A DNA stretch of 64,000 nt, from the NCBI RefSeq assembly GCF_000315625.1, contig NW_005434592.1, positions 177,225 through 241,224 on the forward strand, written 5' to 3'. This document shows positions 33,448 to 40,799 of the stretch, piece by piece. The first letter of the stretch is position 1. Each line of letters opens with the position of its first letter. The stretch is from Guillardia theta CCMP2712. Lineage: Eukaryota > Protista > Cryptophyta. The position numbers were made by a program, and so were the translations under genes. The notes below the pieces were generated by a model. It was not told the DNA's origin and ran no database searches. It saw only the letters and a program-made list of their open reading frames with translations.

Positions 33448-33488
33448 AGCTCAGCTCAGCTCAGCTCAGATCAGATCAGATCAGATCA
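33448..33488. repeat. (AGCTC)n-(AGATC)n pentamer array between convergent genes
   Basis: Direct read. Confidence 0.85.
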
Positions 33489-34658
33489 GTTCGTCGTCGC
33501 TTCTTCCGACTTTCTGCCTAGCTGCTGCTGAGACTCGATTGCTAGAATACATTGTGATATTGAGGACTTGCGGGACATGGCCTCGATCAGTGCCTTGAGC
33601 GACTCCTCCCTGTTCTTCAAGATGGTGAAAGCTGCTACACACCCCCACCGTACTCTTTCCTGCTGCTCCCTGTCATTCAGCCTTGGGCGCGATCTGTAGA
33701 GGAAAGATTGGAGCTGCGAAAAATCAGCGTATCCCCCTATCGCATCGCCGAATCGAATGGCTTCTGCGACAACCCCAGCAGTCGACACCGCGCACAGGAC
33801 GTCAAGAAACTCGTGCGAGATGCTGTCCTCCTCTGAATCGAAGAACTGCACAGCATTCAGGATCGGGTCATCGGCTGAGTACGCTGCTATCGGGAGCCCA
33901 AGGCAATACCCGACCAGGAAGTGTCCGGCTTCATGCCACAGCAGCCTCTCCCTGTACTCTTGGCTGGCCGCCCTCCTGATCTGGATAAGAACGAGCTGCA
34001 GCAGCCCGGGAACAGACAGTCCCATCCCAAGGAACGCAAAAGGCAGCGATCCCAGCCCAAAGGTGACGACGTAGCGAAGGAGGTCTCCTTGAAGGAACGG
34101 GAGGTTGGGATACTCGGGTATGAAGCATGCGGCCAATGTTGACAGCAGCATGCTGGACAGCAGCGTTGCGTAGAAGGACACGTTGAGAACTTCCATGTCG
34201 TTGTTCCCACTCAGGTCGAATGTATCCTCCTTGACCAGACCTCTCGTGAGCAGTCTCACCTCACCCACCGACACTCTTCTGTACAAGGAGGGCACGCTGT
34301 CCCACATTGACAGCTGCGAGCGCTCTTTGAGGGAGTTCAAGGCATCCACTACATCGTCTTTGCTCCAGCCCTCGCTGTTTTCGAGCTTCTCCAACCGCGA
34401 TATCACATCTCGTATCTCTCGAGCCCCCTCGTTCTTCGTGCTACTCACTGCCTTCATCGTTATGCTCGTTGCGAATCCCCCTGGCGTGAATCTTGTGGCA
34501 GACAGGCAGCGGGCACCAGGAGCGGTCGTCCCGAGCTTGATAGCATGGAACGTGAAGCCAAGAGAGAGGTCAACGAGCAGCAAGAGGAGGCAGCACTGGG
34601 AGAGACACCTGCATCTGGTGGTCATCCCTCCCTCCCATCCCAAGTCAGCAGCGAGCAT
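33486..34658 (-). CDS. Plastid-targeted FtsH/M41 peptidase-domain-only membrane protein (VIR3-like)
   Basis: Intronless 390-aa ORF; signal peptide then GF; two TM segments; RERLLWHEAGHFLVGYCLGLPI zinc motif; AGVVAEAIRFGDAIGGYADF; no AAA domain. Confidence 0.85.
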   Translation of the reverse strand: MLAADLGWEGGMTTRCRCLSQCCLLLLLVDLSLGFTFHAIKLGTTAPGARCLSATRFTPGGFATSITMKAVSSTKNEGAREIRDVISRLEKLENSEGWSKDDVVDALNSLKERSQLSMWDSVPSLYRRVSVGEVRLLTRGLVKEDTFDLSGNNDMEVLNVSFYATLLSSMLLSTLAACFIPEYPNLPFLQGDLLRYVVTFGLGSLPFAFLGMGLSVPGLLQLVLIQIRRAASQEYRERLLWHEAGHFLVGYCLGLPIAAYSADDPILNAVQFFDSEEDSISHEFLDVLCAVSTAGVVAEAIRFGDAIGGYADFSQLQSFLYRSRPRLNDREQQERVRWGCVAAFTILKNREESLKALIEAMSRKSSISQCILAIESQQQLGRKSEEATTN

Positions 34659-34749: not shown

Positions 34750-35290
34750 TCATCCTGAGGCGAGTCCTCCGGGAAAGTTCAACCGTGTGACCCGCCGGGC
34801 ACGCGGCGCACCGTACGGTGGCGCGATTCGGGCTCCGGTTAGGCCGCAGTAGCCTACTGCGGCGGCGGCGGGGGCCGGGCCGGGCCTGGGCCGCCGGGCG
34901 TGCCACGCCGCCGCCGCGGGACCGTACGGTACGGGAGTCCCGGATCGGACGGAGGCTCGAGTCCGATCCCAGCCCGAGTCCGGGGGCCCGACCCGGATCC
35001 GGGACCGGGTCCGAGTCGGCGACCGCCGCGGGCGGCGTACGCCGTGACTCGGCGAAGTCACTGTGGAGTCCGGGCCCTAGGCCGCGTAGGCTGCGCAGCC
35101 GCCCCGCGGCACCCTGACTCGGGCGAACCGTTGAACAGCGGCACTGGCAGGCCGCCACTGCCGATTCAGCACCGTGCAAAGAGCAAAGACAGTCGGAGAA
35201 CCAGCCATCACCCTGCCGATTGCTGTCCCCCAACTTGAAACCCAGCCTCCGAGGCTCGGTTTTCGGCCTCCGCATGACTCAGTAATGGGT
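34750..35290. repeat. GC-rich micro-palindrome island upstream of the VIR3-like gene
   Basis: CCGTACGG twice, GGATCC, GGGCCC, iterated GAGTCCG; AGTAGCCT at 34848. Confidence 0.65.
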
Positions 35291-35416
35291 CTTTACTACT
35301 AGTAAGCTACTTCACAATGCCATGTACAACAAACTTGCAAAAATAATCAACATCACAACGGAAAAATCGCCCACCAGGTTCACAACTTGGAAAAGCAAAC
35401 CTGCATCGAGTCACAC

Positions 35417-36352
35417 TCACAAGCACGCCCGTAGATAGCCCTCCCCTTGCAGCCGCTTCAGGCTCCTCCCCAGACCCTCGTCCGTCATGATCGCCCTCAC
35501 CGTCCCCCTCATCGACACCTCATACAGCGCTATCCCCCGCCCCCCGCCCTGCCCTCGCTCGTACCCTCCCTCCCCGCAGTGATCCCCCAGCATCTTGGTC
35601 AGCGTCTCCAGGCCGTGCGGGGGGGTTCCTTTCTTGTCCACGTACAGCGGCAGCTCTACCTTCTTCTCCCCCACCATCCGCCCTGCCTGCCAGTACTCCA
35701 CCTGCAGCTCGAAGAACCGCATGCTCACGCTCTCGAACTCCCCCGCCCCCACAGGACTGTGCCTCCCTGTGTCCACCTCCCCTTGCTCCCCCTGCTCCGC
35801 CTCCGTCCATCCCCCCGCCTCTGCCCCGTGCCTCTCAGACCCGACCGCCGGCGACCAGTCCCCGCCGTCTCCCTCTGTGGCCTTGCAAGGCTCGGCTCTC
35901 GGGGATGCTGCGTGCTTGCGATCCTCCCTGTCTGCCAGACCGTGTCGCTCCATGAAGTGCTGGTACCAGCTCATGCATGCCCGGAAGCCCTTCACCTGCA
36001 GCTGCCTCGCTGCCTCCTCGGCGAAGCCGCACACCTCAGCTCGCCCACGCACCCTTCCCTCACCAGACAAGGCATAGTTGTGCACAAGCCGCTCTAGCTC
36101 CGGGTTGTGCTTGACGGAGCATCGCTTGCGCTTGGTGTCCATGCCCGCGCTCGCAAGCCCCTTGAGCCGGGCGACGTTGTCAGGGCGGAGGATCTTGTCG
36201 ATGGCGGTGCGGCTTTTTCCGTAGATGACGGAGAGCTGCTTGGGGGTGCGATGGAGGGAGGGGTCAGTGGCCTCGTAGGAGTGGATGATGTCGAGCTTCT
36301 GAGCGAGGGTGAGCCGCTCGTTGGTCTCTGACTGGTCGACAGGAAAGTGCAT
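35417..36352 (-). CDS. CENP-B/pogo-type bipartite HTH DNA-binding protein, copy 1 (no DDE domain)
   Basis: LTLAQKLDII..LSVIYGKSRTAIDKIL (psq-type HTH); PELERLV..AEEAARQL..FRACMSWYQHFMERHGL (Tc5/CENP-B HTH); intronless, 311 aa. Confidence 0.82.
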   Translation of the reverse strand: MHFPVDQSETNERLTLAQKLDIIHSYEATDPSLHRTPKQLSVIYGKSRTAIDKILRPDNVARLKGLASAGMDTKRKRCSVKHNPELERLVHNYALSGEGRVRGRAEVCGFAEEAARQLQVKGFRACMSWYQHFMERHGLADREDRKHAASPRAEPCKATEGDGGDWSPAVGSERHGAEAGGWTEAEQGEQGEVDTGRHSPVGAGEFESVSMRFFELQVEYWQAGRMVGEKKVELPLYVDKKGTPPHGLETLTKMLGDHCGEGGYERGQGGGRGIALYEVSMRGTVRAIMTDEGLGRSLKRLQGEGYLRACL

Positions 36353-36652
36353 TGTTGTCTTAGAGACCAGGAAGTTTTGTGCTAACGAAGCACAGAACAG
36401 TACCTTCTTGCAAGATTGAAGGGAGATGGTTGGCTAGGACACTGAGAAAGGATGATTGTTGTTCGGGTAGGAAACGGAAGTGCAAGAATGGCGTTGGGTT
36501 GCGAGGGGTGGGAGGGCGATAGTTGGGGGATTGCACAGGAAGGGCCTTCGTGGCTATTGATAAAGTGGGACACGTTGGGCTGTTATATCTCCCCCGTCAC
36601 GGGGCACATTAACAGAACGATGTGAAAACACATTGTTACAGAGAAACAAAGG

Positions 36653-36674
36653 TGACCTCTCGTCCCAGAGGTCA
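36653..36674. promoter_or_regulatory. 22-bp palindrome TGACCTCT-CGTCCC-AGAGGTCA upstream of HTH copy 1
   Basis: Perfect 8-bp arms; its reverse complement is identical to 38699-38720. The regulatory role is inferred. Confidence 0.6.
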
Positions 36675-37025
36675 TACACAGACTACGTATTTCGACCTCT
36701 GGGGGTCAAAGATCGTCAAAAATAATTTTTGAAACAATATGTTACAATGAAGCAGTGTGATTTTGATTCGTACTTGACCTTGAGATTATCAGGCACTTGA
36801 ATCATTGACATATTCAACTCTCCAACTTAGCGCGTGGACGCATGACGACCTCTCGTTTCTAAACGACATCAGCAAGAAACCCGAAATAGCCAATTGAACC
36901 ATTACTACATGTAATGACTGCACAATCATGTCACTTGTCACGGTGCTGGCCTCGAAGAGAACGAAGAGAGACCACAACGCTCTGATCATTTTACTGAGTA
37001 GTAAATACTTTTACAGGGCAACTGC

Positions 37026-37047
37026 TGACCTCTCGCACCAGAGGTCA
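37026..37047. promoter_or_regulatory. 22-bp palindrome TGACCTCT-CGCACC-AGAGGTCA upstream of HTH copy 2
   Basis: Same arms and 6-bp spacer; TATAAAA follows at ~37156. Confidence 0.6.
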
Positions 37048-37196
37048 GAATTGGCTACGAAATCAGCCAAAACCACAGCGTTTCAAAACGAACAACCGTG
37101 ACAAATCCCCAGCTCTGTATCTCAAGACTGCGACGCCCATACAGCGACAACCCCCTATAAAAGCGGCCGGGCGTGAAACCTGAACACGAGGGCGGA

Positions 37197-38145
37197 ATGC
37201 TTACGTCGTGTGGGCATCAACCCATCCTCTCAGAGACCAACGAACGGCTCACCCTCGCTCAGAAGCTCGACATCATCCACTCCTACGAGGCCACTGACCC
37301 CTCCCTCCATCGCACCCCCAAGCAGCTCTCCGTCATCTACGGAAAAAGCCGCACCGCCATCGACAAGATCCTCCGCCCTGACAACGTCGCCCGGCTCAAG
37401 GGGCTTGCGAGCGCGGGCATGGACACCAAGCGCAAGCGATGCTCCGTCAAGCACAACCCGGAGCTAGAGCGGCTTGTGCACAACTATGCCTTGTCTGGTG
37501 AGGGAAGGGTGCGTGGGCGAGCTGAGGTGTGCGGCTTCGCCGAGGAGGCAGCGAGGCAGCTGCAGGTGAAGGGCTTCCGGGCATGCATGAGCTGGTACCA
37601 GCACTTCATGGAGCGACACGGCCTGGCAGACAGGGAGGATCGCAAGCACGCAGCGTCCCCGAGAGCCGAGCCTTGCAAGGCCACAGAGGGAGACGGCGGG
37701 GACTGGTCGCCGGCGGTCGGGTCTGAGAGGCACGGGGCAGAGGCGGGGGGATGGACGGAGGCGGAGCAGGGGGAGCAAAGGGGAGGTGGACACAGGGAGG
37801 CACAGTCCTGTGGGGGCGGGGGAGTTCGAGAGCGTGAGCATGCGGTTCTTCGAGCTGCAGGTGGAGTACTGGCAGGCAGGGCGGATGGTGGGGGAGAAGA
37901 AGGTAGAGCTGCCGCTGTACGTGGACAAGAAAGGAACCCCCCCGCACGGCCTGGAGACGCTGACCAAGATGCTGGGGGATCACTGCGGGGAGGGAGGGTA
38001 CGAGCGAGGGCAGGGCGGGGGGCGGGGGATAGCGCTGTATGAGGTGTCGATGAGGGGGACGGTGAGGGCGATCATGACGGACGAGGGTCTGGGGAGGAGC
38101 CTGAAGCGGCTGCAAGGGGAGGGCTATCTACGGGCGTGCTTGTGA
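37197..38145 (+). pseudogene. CENP-B-like HTH gene copy 2, frameshifted
   Basis: Nearly identical to copies 1 and 3. An extra A at 37777-37779 (gagcaaagggg vs gagcaagggg) splits it into ORFs 37173-38042 and 37786-38145; this could be a sequencing error. Confidence 0.7.
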
Positions 38146-38698
38146 GTGTGACTCGATGCAGGTTTGCTTTTGATCTTATTGGTTTTATACATTTTTCATG
38201 CTAAATTTAAAAGGAAATGCAATATCTGTTTTTCTATTCTGAGGTGCTTCGAAGCCAATCAGATGTATCGATTTTTACTGTTAGCCAATGAAGATGGCCT
38301 GCTCATATTACCTCGCTCAATGAAAGAACTACAAGGCCAGTGAATCTTTGCACTGCCAGCACGACAAACTCAGCATTGAAGCGGGAAGCATTCCCATCCG
38401 AGTCAGGTTGCTGATACTGGAAATGAAGCTGATACGTTGCTGATAGCGAATGGTGATACCTGATTGCCTCTCAATCCGGCGAATCTTAATTAATGAAATA
38501 CTCGCCCCGTGACTAGTGTTGGGCCATGACTGTAGTTTACCACTGTGCTCTTGTGGTCATCGTTCCATTCGGAGCTGCCAGAGAAAGACAACCTTTCATA
38601 CTTGTCCTTCGTGTCTATTATAATAATGCAATGTTTCGTCAATTTTACCTCCATTAAAAACTATTTACACGGTCCTTGAGATTCAAAGGTCGAATTCA

Positions 38699-38720
38699 TG
38701 ACCTCTGGGACGAGAGGTCA
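38699..38720. promoter_or_regulatory. 22-bp palindrome TGACCTCT-GGGACG-AGAGGTCA upstream of HTH copy 3
   Basis: Identical 22-mer, in the same orientation relative to its gene as for copy 1. Confidence 0.6.
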
Positions 38721-39085
38721 TCTTTTTGTTGCGTTTTCTCAACGCATCGCAATATTCCACGAGCTCAAAACCTCAGATACTTCGAAAGGTACTTCACATT
38801 GGGGGTAGGGTGTCACGGAAGGGGCCCAACGGAGCAAGGTAGAAAGATGCTCATAAAATATTAGATACTCACATATACATTCACCCTACTGTACAGCATC
38901 TATATATGGTAAGTGTACCTCATAGATCAACACAGTGGGTGGGGGTACTCCAAGATAGGCACACATCTCCAATTTCTTCCTCTCCCCTCCTTCCTCCTGC
39001 TTCGCGTTCACATACACGTCAGACCACCAGCTCCAACGCCAAGACGACAGTTGAGCAGGAGATAGAATCCTGTTCCCGTGCTGAC

Positions 39086-40021
39086 ATGCACATTCCTGTC
39101 GACCAGTCAGAGACCAACGAACGGCTCACCCTCGCTCAGAAGCTCGACATCATCCACTCCTACGAGGCCACTGACCCCTCCCTCCATCGCACCCCCAAGC
39201 AGCTCTCCGTCATCTACGGAAAAAGCCGCACCGCCATCGACAAGATCCTCCGCCCTGACAACGTCGCCCGGCTCAAGGGGCTTGCGAGCGCGGGCATGGA
39301 CACCAAGCGCAAGCGATGCTCCGTCAAAAATCACCAAGAACTAGAGCGGCTTGTGCACAACTATGCCTTGTCTGGTGAGGGAATGGTGCGTGGGCGAGCT
39401 GAGGTGTGCGGCTTCGCCGAGGAGGCAGCGAGGCAGCTGCAGGTGAAGGGCTTCCGGGCATGCATGAGCTGGTACCAGCACTTCATGGAGCGACACGGCC
39501 TGGCAGACAGGGAGGATCGCAAGCACGCAGCATCCCCGAGAGCCGAGCCTTGCAAGGCCACAGAGGGAGACGGCGGGGACTGGTCGCCGGCGGTCGGGTC
39601 TGAGAGGCACGGGGCAGAGGCGGGGGGATGGACGGAGGCGGAGCAGGGGGAGCAAGGGGAGGTGGACACAGGGAGGCACAGTCCTGTGGGGGCGGGGGAG
39701 TTCGAGAGCGTGAGCATGCGGTTCTTCGAGCTGCAGGTGGAGTACTGGCAGGCAGGGCGGATGGTGGGGGAGAAGAAGGTAGAGCTGCCGCTGTACGTGG
39801 ACAAGAAAGGAACCCCCCCGCACGGTCTGGAGACGCTGACCAAGATGCTGGGGGATCACTGCGGGGAGGGAGGGTACGAGCGAGGGCAGGGCGGGGGGCG
39901 GGGGATAGCGCTGTATGAGGTGTCGATGAGGGGGACGGTGAGGGCGATCATGACGGACGAGGGTCTGGGGAGGAGCCTGAAGCGGCTGCAAGGGGAGGGC
40001 TATCTACGGGCGTGCTTGTGA
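39086..40021 (+). CDS. CENP-B/pogo-type HTH DNA-binding protein, copy 3
   Basis: 311 aa; differs from copy 1 at a few residues (MHIP/MHFP, KNHQEL/KHNPEL, GMV/GRV). Confidence 0.82.
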   Translation: MHIPVDQSETNERLTLAQKLDIIHSYEATDPSLHRTPKQLSVIYGKSRTAIDKILRPDNVARLKGLASAGMDTKRKRCSVKNHQELERLVHNYALSGEGMVRGRAEVCGFAEEAARQLQVKGFRACMSWYQHFMERHGLADREDRKHAASPRAEPCKATEGDGGDWSPAVGSERHGAEAGGWTEAEQGEQGEVDTGRHSPVGAGEFESVSMRFFELQVEYWQAGRMVGEKKVELPLYVDKKGTPPHGLETLTKMLGDHCGEGGYERGQGGGRGIALYEVSMRGTVRAIMTDEGLGRSLKRLQGEGYLRACL

Positions 40022-40471
40022 AGGGTGCGAACCTAAGGACGCAACGGAGTGGAAGGATGTAGATTAGAAACGTGGGTGAAGATAAATGCGATGATTGAAT
40101 AAATTGATGAATTAAGATGACTACACTTATTGCATTGAAAACATGAAGAGCAGCAGGATGTTGTTTCTTGTCTCGTCCGCTTGCTGCTTCTTGTTCGTTC
40201 ACTTGTGTGCTTCTCGTTCTATACAACAAGCAACGATGGTACAGTACCCCTACCCCCTCAGCTACCCTTTAATTATCTGGGAATGTAACCGGTGCGGTAT
40301 CACCCCTACCCCAGTGGCTCTCGTGTTGGACAGCATGAACAAAGCCGAGGAGAGGATGATGAGGGTGTAGGGGAGGGAGGGGAAGAGAGGCTGAAGGAGG
40401 GAAAGCTGAACAAGTTGAATAGAAGATGGAAGAGAGCGTGGAGGGGCCGGAAGGGGGGGGGGGGGGGGGGG

Positions 40472-40571
40472 NNNNNNNNNNNNNNNNNNNNNNNNNNNNN
40501 NNNNNNNNNNNNNNNNNNNNNNNNNNNNNNNNNNNNNNNNNNNNNNNNNNNNNNNNNNNNNNNNNNNNNNN
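40472..40571. other. Assembly gap (100 N) after a poly-G run
   Basis: Direct read. Confidence 0.99.
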
Positions 40572-40799
40572 TAAAGGAGTCTGTTCGTCCCCCCAGGAAA
40601 TATTAAAAATGGGGGTCAGGTTTCCAGGGGTTCCCCTCTTCCTTTTCCACTGAAATATTTGTTAGGTTCCGGGCTCTCTTTTTTGGGGGTAAACCCCCCC
40701 CAACAAAGACCCACCATAAGCATAATCACCTCTATTCCCCCCCCCCCCCCCCCCACTCCCTCTTCTTACTCCTCTCATTGCACACCCCTCCCACTCTGT

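Follow-up and report, generated by a model that had tools for sequence, protein, structure and literature searches.

A 22-bp palindrome, TGACCTCT-N6-AGAGGTCA, stands upstream of each of three nearly identical helix-turn-helix (HTH) genes of Guillardia theta, and it is a conserved non-coding element, clearly above the surrounding non-coding DNA in its conservation. We give a probability of about one half to the reading that this dyad is a cis-regulatory promoter element, for which selection and protein binding are deduced from the sequence, and we regard the palindrome as a good candidate for a control site that serves this gene cluster alone.

A palindrome confined to one locus

The three exact copies occupy positions 36653-36674 (site 1), 37026-37047 (site 2) and 38699-38720 (site 3) of the window, that is, of the whole stretch of 64,000 nucleotides that was analysed, and all fall within 2.1 kb; shuffles of the window give an expectation of 0.05 copies. 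A scan of 87,145,349 bases of the genome returned these three as the only exact matches, and the reversed-pattern control returned none. The initial annotation, which had placed the motif at these positions and nowhere else in the window, thus holds even genome-wide. No copy with one mismatch was found in the 87.1-Mb genome, while copies with two mismatches are at background (36, against 27 for the control) and none of them lies less than 5 kb from any HTH paralogue. The arms in inverted arrangement occur genome-wide at this locus alone, at any spacer from 0 to 30. Searches of the genome with the exact motif, with up to two mismatches, with spacers of 0-30, and with the arms in everted and direct arrangements gave nothing above the control, apart from purine-rich tandem repeats that are unrelated.

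Measured from its near edge to the ATG, the palindrome lies 301 nt (site 1, TGACCTCTCGTCCCAGAGGTCA), 151 nt (site 2, TGACCTCTCGCACCAGAGGTCA) and 366 nt (site 3) 5' of the respective gene, in line with the 150-370 bp estimated earlier. The 22-mer of site 1 recurs at site 3 as its reverse complement, so that sites 1 and 3 present the identical sequence in the same gene-relative orientation, as had been proposed, and with their flanks 27 of 28 nucleotides agree. Site 2 differs from them only at two central positions; its core is oriented on the plus strand like that of site 1, and its gene-relative orientation is therefore inverted with respect to the other two. The arms extend to 9 bp at site 2 when the flanking C/G is counted, and likewise at site 3 with the flanking A/T. 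Read in the orientation of the spacer, all three sites conform to TGACCTCTCG-NN-CCAGAGGTCA. The palindrome is hence invariant at 20 of its 22 positions, the arms are identical across the copies at 48 of 48 positions, and variation is limited to the two central positions of the dyad, a placement expected once in 231.

Two partial copies, also reported initially, proved real. The sequence at 36694-36708 (GACCTCTGGG/GGTCA) is a degenerate inverted copy that lacks 6 nt; its counterpart upstream of gene 3, at about 38672-38690, has decayed further. An isolated 10-nt half-site, GACCTCTCGT, is found on the plus strand at 36847-36856, where the chance expectation for such a match in the 845-bp intergenic region is about 0.002.

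Conservation of the motif against its surroundings

No pair of copies shows homology over the 295-365 nt that separate motif and ATG (p 0.46-0.73), and in the 3' flanks homology does not extend past 26 nt. Sites 1 and 3 share an alignable stretch on their gene-distal side, of about 40-45 nt at 72% identity (29/40) with a 12-nt indel, and a residual-homology island around site 1 (36618-36730, minus strand) aligns with one around site 3 (38656-38745, plus strand). The flank alignments revealed no significant homology of site 2 with the other sites. The earlier remark that the rest of the upstream DNA does not visibly align is therefore correct for the proximal 295-365 nt and incorrect for the distal 45 nt or so of sites 1 and 3.

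Alignment of the three upstream regions, which the initial annotation had named as a check, places the motif far above its surroundings, where the 72% flank identity is available for one pair only. Taking this generous value as the background, the probability of 27 identities in 28 is 1.4e-3 and that of 20 in 22 is 0.036, giving about 5e-5 jointly; the comparison is one among paralogous promoters of a single genome. Another paralogue cluster (C2) also contains similarity islands, of 37-55 nt and 84-92% identity, which are non-palindromic, and we count this against the cis-element reading.

Gene copies, transcripts and promoter elements

Genes 1 (35417-36352, minus strand, ATG at 36352) and 3 (39086-40021, plus strand, ATG at 39086) each encode 311 aa and are 98% identical in protein and 99% in DNA, the identity being bounded by the ATG and the stop codon. 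Gene 2 (37198-38145, plus strand, ATG at 37198) differs in its first seven codons and carries an extra A near 37782 that shifts the frame within the linker, so that its PB1-like domain is out of frame. This copy may be a pseudogene or a truncated form, or the shift may be an error of the assembly; RNA reads are present at the 3' end of the gene. Since the coding regions of the three copies are 98-100% identical and have sharp edges, gene conversion is clearly active at the locus.

The RNA contig of gene 1 spans 35602-36549, indicating a 5'UTR of at least 197 nt, and the contigs of gene 3 start at 38977 and 39004. Between the 5'-most of these ends and the palindrome there remain 104 nt at gene 1 and 257 nt at gene 3, and no aligned RNA contig overlaps any of the three palindromes, bearing in mind that contigs show presence and not absence. 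The motif is therefore probably located 5' of the transcription starts, which are approximate. From reading of the sequence, a TATA-like box follows each motif, as first noticed by the initial annotation: at 36584-36589 on the minus strand for gene 1, 35-40 nt 5' of the contig end, at 37156-37163 (TATAAAAG, plus strand) for gene 2 and at 38901-38907 (TATATAT, plus strand) for gene 3. The distance from motif to box differs among the copies (64, 109 and 181 nt, respectively), which together with the inverted site 2 fits an upstream site that would work independently of orientation.

The encoded protein and its family

The gene 1 protein consists of a bipartite HTH region (aa 16-149), a disordered linker and a PB1-like beta-grasp domain (aa 210-310). 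A Pfam search with this protein gave no match at E<=1, HTH_Tnp_Tc5, CENP-B_N and PB1 included. All ten paralogues tested, which are 35-47% identical to it over aa 10-140, match HTH_Tnp_Tc5 above the cut-off, with CENP-B_N just below. In the AF2 model, pLDDT exceeds 90 over aa 11-140, and Foldseek aligns this region with the CENP-B(1-129)/DNA structure 1HLV_A at a TM of 0.58 over 130 columns, with a weak E-value of 0.017. On the basis of the Pfam matches of its paralogues and of this predicted fold, we assign the protein to the CENP-B/pogo-type bipartite HTH class, as initially annotated. Neither the Pfam search nor the model contains a DDE domain.

The C-terminal region presents the DSSP order E-E-H-E-E-H-E over aa 210-310, corresponding to the bbabbab beta-grasp fold, and Foldseek ranks PB1 domains highest among its matches (E 7e-4, TMt 0.55-0.64). 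By sequence it has no match in the PDB or the Atlas, and BLASTP against the PB1 domain of the paralogue L017 returned no similarity. The canonical acidic OPCA motif of PB1 is replaced, the position reading YVDKKG, which we count against the cis-regulatory reading preferred below. The fold search thus suggests a PB1-like domain, one that matches PB1 neither in sequence nor in its OPCA motif.

The HTH family counts about 80 paralogue loci, some of which carry a PB1 domain, and is cryptophyte-specific, being found in Guillardia, Hanusia and Rhodomonas. The only orthologue found, from Hanusia phi, is a 5'-truncated, transcript-derived protein in which all but about four positions of the HTH part that aligns (aa 44-139) are unchanged; no contig encoding it was found. 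A protein-guided metagenome scan returned no relative, and a metagenome scan for the motif gave at least 120 chance matches; none of those listed lay by an HTH gene or resembled the locus in its flanks. To our knowledge, almost nothing has been described of promoter elements and sequence-specific transcription factors in cryptophytes, and our literature search found nothing on such elements or on CENP-B/pogo-type factors in this group.

No evidence for a family-wide regulon

The initial annotation had also proposed that a master factor co-regulates the family, and had suggested a genome scan for enrichment upstream of HTH paralogues. The palindrome is absent from the roughly 80 paralogue loci, and the half-site is enriched neither there nor elsewhere. 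Upstream of 21 paralogues, palindromes with arms of at least 7 bp are as frequent as in the window background (about 1.2 per kb), and no two of these regions have one in common. With the motif absent from the paralogue loci, the proposal of a master regulator of the family is not supported.

Alternative explanations

The three upstream regions could derive from one duplicated segment, in which case the motif would be a functionless leftover or a gene-conversion patch and its symmetry incidental or inherited. We regard this as possible, with a chance that is real and clearly a minor one. Sites 1 and 3 share distal-flank homology, orientation and a similar distance to their genes, as would result from an inverted segmental duplication. 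Conversion is active at the locus, so that recent patchy conversion may underlie the likeness of the motifs; the islands of C2 are known to exist without palindromes, and a motif with no further genomic copy defines no regulon. Such a history nevertheless requires three survivals with all arm positions intact beside sequence that cannot be aligned up to the coding region, it has to place both differences precisely on the dyad centre, and it finds no significant flank homology at site 2. Moreover, recombination is known to need far more homology, as a rule, than a conversion tract of 22-28 nt isolated by some 300 nt of unrelated sequence would offer.

The origin from transposon ends that had been suggested initially is improbable. 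On this account, sites 1 and 3 would be the terminal inverted repeats of a pogo-derived cassette of about 2.08 kb (36648-38725) containing copy 2, or relics of ancestral transposon ends. They do form a 28-nt inverted repeat of 96% identity, 2022 nt apart, around copy 2, with imperfect homology extending inward, the HTH of our protein is of the pogo/Tc5 transposase type, and transposase HTH domains are known to bind the terminal repeats of their own element. Yet the protein lacks a DDE domain, the genome has just two DDE_1 loci, neither with related inverted repeats at its ends, and the motif, without other copies anywhere in the genome, is no dispersed repeat. The supposed element would itself contain a third motif copy and the partial copies, its outer boundary is not sharp, as weak homology continues gene-proximally, and no TA target-site duplication is evident on reading of the sequence. 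Because copies 1 and 3, which lie outside, extend the inverted symmetry, a larger inverted duplication explains the apparent terminal repeats. More improbable still is a role as nucleic-acid structure, be it a cruciform or hairpin with a part in recombination or in replication, or the hairpin and T-run at the end of a small upstream RNA. Each site does fold, with an 8-9-bp stem and a 6-nt loop (DNA dG -6.4 to -8.2 kcal/mol, z -2.3 to -3.3); T-rich runs lie gene-ward of sites 1 and 3, both of which a terminator scan detects, and about 45 nt upstream of these two sites are conserved. Against this, none of the eight pairs shows a compensatory change, and invariance as such says nothing for structure; no T-run follows site 2, conservation of the second, upstream hairpin does not extend to gene 3, and terminator-like matches are no commoner than in shuffled sequences. 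An Rfam search gave no match, the sites lie outside all aligned RNA contigs, and, since the sequence between them and the homogenised coding regions is non-homologous, the palindromes are not places where conversion starts.

A candidate cis-regulatory dyad and its putative binder

In the cis-regulatory explanation that we prefer, purifying selection would hold the spacer-oriented sequence in the promoters of all three gene copies, about 100-250 nt 5' of the transcription starts. Most likely the dyad would be recognised in double-stranded form, by a sequence-specific protein that binds as a symmetric dimer, and the weaker copies at 36694 and 36847 may add a small homotypic cluster in the control region shared by genes 1 and 2. 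The nuclear HTH/PB1-like protein encoded by the cluster could itself be the binder and so exert feedback on the dosage of a multi-copy gene. As the full site is found nowhere else in the genome, this product is the most economical candidate. We propose such self-binding tentatively, as a part of the cis-regulatory reading, and more tentatively still that a domesticated pogo-type HTH protein, forming dimers or oligomers through its PB1-like domain, binds a dyad private to its three promoters and would thereby have retained a transposase's recognition of its own DNA. A CENP-B-type bipartite domain is known to act as a monomer on an asymmetric site of about 17 bp (1HLV); the 22-bp dyad is thus not a textbook target for such a domain, and this counts against the proposal, as does the fact that a transcription factor with perfect sites solely at its own promoters is unusual.

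Autoregulatory operators of the lambda cI/Cro, TetR and LacI types share with our sites a dyad of 16-22 bp upstream of an HTH gene, a free dyad centre and graded sites in a divergent control region, and here, too, the dyad-symmetric site lies in the control region of the HTH gene itself. Unlike these prokaryotic and phage operators, the dyad stands at a nuclear gene of a eukaryote, with TATA boxes and with a bipartite pogo/CENP-B HTH product whose binding is putative, and the sites lie 64-181 nt 5' of the TATA box instead of overlapping the promoter. CENP-B resembles the cluster protein in its N-terminal bipartite HTH and in being a host protein that derives from pogo and lacks transposase activity, whereas its box is asymmetric, 17 bp long, bound by a monomeric domain and present in thousands of satellite copies, as opposed to a symmetric 22-bp site in three promoter copies; the CENP-B C-terminus is a DDE remnant with a dimerisation domain, that of our protein apparently PB1-like. 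The terminal repeats of pogo/Tc1-mariner elements are comparable in the HTH_Tnp_Tc5-type family and in the inverted pair formed by sites 1 and 3, but the locus has no DDE domain, dispersed copies, defined termini or related genomic element.

Domesticated pogo-derived regulators, namely the Pipsqueak/psq-HTH proteins, POGK, JRK, fission-yeast Abp1/Cbh and yeast Pdc2, retain of the transposase its DNA-binding module alone and join it to a protein-interaction domain. As with these regulators, we deal with a host gene whose family has expanded in one lineage, the difference being that this family is cryptophyte-specific, with PB1 in some paralogues and a predicted PB1-like fold in this member. The outer hexamer of the arms (AGGTCA/TGACCT) and the symmetry recall nuclear-receptor response elements. 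The likeness is one of letters alone; the hexamers are everted with 10 nt between them and 10 nt per half are conserved; nuclear receptors are metazoan, and we do not propose such a mechanism.

The locus pairs a genome-unique 22-bp candidate site with a candidate binder from a lineage-specific, pogo-transposase-derived HTH family. If the product does bind its own promoters, a transposase DNA-binding module would have been turned into a gene-dosage feedback device, and the locus would amount to an operator-like feedback module, complete in itself, within a eukaryotic nucleus and would provide the first pair of transcription factor and cis-element to be defined in a cryptophyte. If it does not, the locus would still be a clean case of selection keeping a small dyad while conversion homogenises the coding regions alone of the duplicates.

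Results

The palindrome is private to one locus

The palindrome TGACCTCT-N6-AGAGGTCA matches exactly at window positions 36653, 37026 and 38699 (sites 1, 2 and 3), one upstream of each of three near-identical genes for an HTH protein (copies 1, 2 and 3), and no further copy was found in the window with up to two mismatches allowed (0.05 in shuffles). Across the whole assembly (87,145,349 bases, 669 contigs), the exact matches are the same three, and the reversed-pattern control gives 0. Allowing up to two mismatches adds 36 places compared to 27 for the control; all 36 carry exactly two mismatches, so that there is no one-mismatch copy, and all of them are more than 5 kb away from any paralogue, that is, another locus encoding a relative of the HTH protein. 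Freeing the spacer to 0–30 nt still returns only sites 1, 2 and 3 genome-wide, and an everted arrangement of the arms occurs 3 times versus 1 for the control. Direct arm repeats were rejected as related sites: they belong to unrelated purine-rich tandem repeats. Since the genome-wide counts stay near the control and exact matches occur at one locus only, the palindrome is real, private to the three-gene locus and no dispersed repeat. The initial annotation, which placed it at these positions and nowhere else in the window, is thereby sharpened to the whole assembly.

With the asymmetric spacer used to set the orientation, each site reads TGACCTCTCG-NN-CCAGAGGTCA. Twenty of the 22 positions are invariant, the two variable ones being the dyad centre (TC in sites 1 and 3, CA in site 2), and the symmetry reaches positions 10/13. 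Intrastrand template switching could maintain complementary arms within a copy but would not make them identical between copies. Sites 1 and 2 run in the same direction along the plus strand and site 3 in the other, so the gene-relative orientation is shared by sites 1 and 3, as the initial annotation had stated, and is opposite in site 2. The partial versions it reported near 36694 and 36847, in the intergenic region shared by copies 1 and 2, proved to be a weaker inverted copy lacking 6 nt (36694–36708) and a 10-nt half-site (36847–36856).

Similarity between the gene copies collapses outside the coding regions

Copy 1 (35417–36352, minus strand) and copy 3 (39086–40021, plus strand) share 99% identity along a stretch of exactly 936 nt that runs from ATG to stop codon. 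Copy 2 (about 37198–38145, plus strand) matches copy 1 from codon 8 to 26 nt beyond the stop; its N-terminus is replaced relative to the other copies, and one extra A near 37782 shifts the frame within the linker. Near-identity in 35391–40021 is thus limited to the ORFs, with unalignable flanks and no 3' flank similarity past those 26 nt. The initial annotation described the rest of the DNA upstream of copies 1 and 3 as not visibly aligning, which holds for the 295–365 nt from palindrome to ATG in every pair (p 0.46–0.73 versus shuffles) but not for the gene-distal flank of sites 1 and 3, where 29 of 40 positions are identical beside a 12-nt indel. Locally, the surroundings of these two sites align over about 110 columns (score 70 against 28 ± 3 in shuffles), including a 28-nt core that is 27/28 identical, and site 2 has no significant flank similarity to either in the same comparison. 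If no more than one mismatch is allowed, the longest stretch shared by the two upstream regions measures 28 nt, compared to 11–14 nt in shuffles. When the neutral expectation is set, generously, at the 72% identity seen in the best-aligned flank, the probability of 27/28 is 1.4e-3 and of 20/22 is 0.036 (joint 5e-5). Because similarity collapses outside the coding regions, the palindrome stands as an island of conservation.

Other paralogue clusters present related patterns. Locus L166 (G000:C2:1039500–1049499) contains three copies, one inverted relative to the other two, with blocks at 98–99% identity, as well as a 151-nt fragment copy, and locus L169 (G000:C139:76000–84000) holds head-to-head copies identical at 100% over 657 nt, with flanks at 85% then 77%; homogenisation limited to the coding region looks like a general trait of the family. 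Just 3' of copy 1, a GC-rich block (34780–35130) is crowded with short palindromes (CCGGGCC- and ACCGTACGGT-type words), and several paralogues (L009, L011, L020, L024) have comparable blocks upstream. Adjoining copy 1, a 390-aa ORF (33486–34658, minus strand) carries a HEAGH zinc-protease-like motif, its Peptidase_M41 match being sub-threshold (E 0.09). An assembly gap of 100 N, 430 nt downstream of copy 3, is preceded by poly-G and followed by poly-C (40452–40571 and 40740–40760), and the sequence around it may be unreliable.

The sites lie upstream of known RNA ends

The RNA contigs come from presumed RNA runs and show presence rather than absence, so positions relative to RNA ends are approximate. 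The gene 1 contig reaches 36549, giving a 5'UTR of at least 197 nt, and ends 35–40 nt downstream of a TATA-like box (36584–36589); gene 3 contigs begin at 38977 and 39004, downstream of a TATATAT (38901–38907). None of the RNA contigs mapped to the locus includes a palindrome, which leaves about 104 nt between site 1 and the known RNA end of gene 1, and about 257 nt between site 3 and that of gene 3, the site being upstream in both cases. The TATA boxes of genes 1, 2 and 3 follow their palindromes at distances of 64, 109 and 181 nt. At the 3' ends of copies 2 and 3 there are also raw, 3'-biased RNA reads. Between genes 2 and 3, a 371-nt presumed-RNA contig (38206–38569, depth 6.8) ends 130 nt before site 3 and could be a long copy-2 3'UTR, an unannotated transcript or DNA carry-over.

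The genes belong to a cryptophyte HTH family

The HTH protein itself has no Pfam match, and its N-terminal 130 residues have at least 79 genomic matches, frequently in tandem or inverted arrays. HTH_Tnp_Tc5 scores above the curated cut-off in all ten paralogues tested, with CENP-B_N just below its own, and two of the ten also contain PB1. AlphaFold2 predicts, at a mean pLDDT of 80 that rises above 90 across aa 11–140, a pair of three-helix bundles, then a disordered linker (aa 150–205) and a C-terminal domain ordered strand-strand-helix-strand-strand-helix-strand. In Foldseek the N-terminus matches CENP-B(1–129) bound to its box (1HLV, TMt 0.58), and the best PDB matches are PB1 domains (E 7e-4, TMt 0.55–0.64). 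With no sequence similarity to the paralogues' PB1 and YVDKKG at the acidic OPCA position, the C-terminal domain is termed PB1-like in predicted fold only. Among 5.8 billion clustered proteins (1.84 billion representatives), the sole full-length relative is a transcript-derived Hanusia phi protein (75% identity), whose aligned HTH part (aa 44–139) is invariant save about 4 positions while the linker varies freely; the gene is under purifying selection. Relatives in Hanusia and Rhodomonas (Rhodomonas salina) make the family cryptophyte-wide, and the roughly 79 loci form a large cryptophyte-specific expansion of short pogo/CENP-B-type bipartite HTH genes, many in tandem arrays (for example on contigs C23, C167, C30, C312 and C221), some with a canonical PB1 domain (L017, L022). 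The HTH protein lacks a DDE domain, and the genome has only two DDE_1 loci, neither with related terminal repeats.

Discussion

Among the explanations weighed, the most likely (probability about 0.5) is that the palindrome is a selected, dyad-symmetric upstream element of three promoters, putatively recognised in double-stranded form by a symmetric dimer. This is suggested by arms that are invariant while the dyad centre is free, by indifference to orientation and TATA-box distance, by the accessory weak copies nearby and by the position of the sites upstream of known RNA ends. Selection would then maintain the dyad upstream of all three gene copies. A functionless remnant or a micro-conversion patch is a less probable, if still appreciable, explanation: conversion is evident at the locus and non-palindromic similarity islands exist in the C2 cluster, but it is disfavoured by arms that stay invariant in all three copies, beyond about 300 nt without homology. 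That the palindrome is the relic of a transposon end is quite unlikely, as the 28-nt inverted pair of sites 1 and 3, which does enclose copy 2, is explained by a larger inverted duplication, and none of the further hallmarks of a terminal repeat is present. Action as a hairpin, cruciform or small RNA is more improbable still; although the sites are foldable and sites 1 and 3 have T-rich tails, the arms show no covariation (no compensatory pair change among the three sites), there is no Rfam match, and the mapped contigs give no RNA coverage of the sites.

As to what might bind such a promoter element, the cluster's own HTH product would be the simplest candidate, given that the full palindrome is unique to the cluster. 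We nevertheless consider self-binding doubtful. Against it stand the classical behaviour of CENP-B-type domains, which is to bind an asymmetric site as a monomer, and the oddity of a factor with no perfect target elsewhere, although the latter would disappear if the core that is recognised were shorter than the conserved block. From the initial interpretation there remains a conserved candidate site beside a pogo/CENP-B-type HTH gene; the transposon-end origin and the family-wide regulon are not retained, and a master regulator of the HTH family is not supported, the palindrome being at no paralogue locus and half-sites not in excess there. Under the promoter reading, the palindrome would be a conserved promoter dyad.
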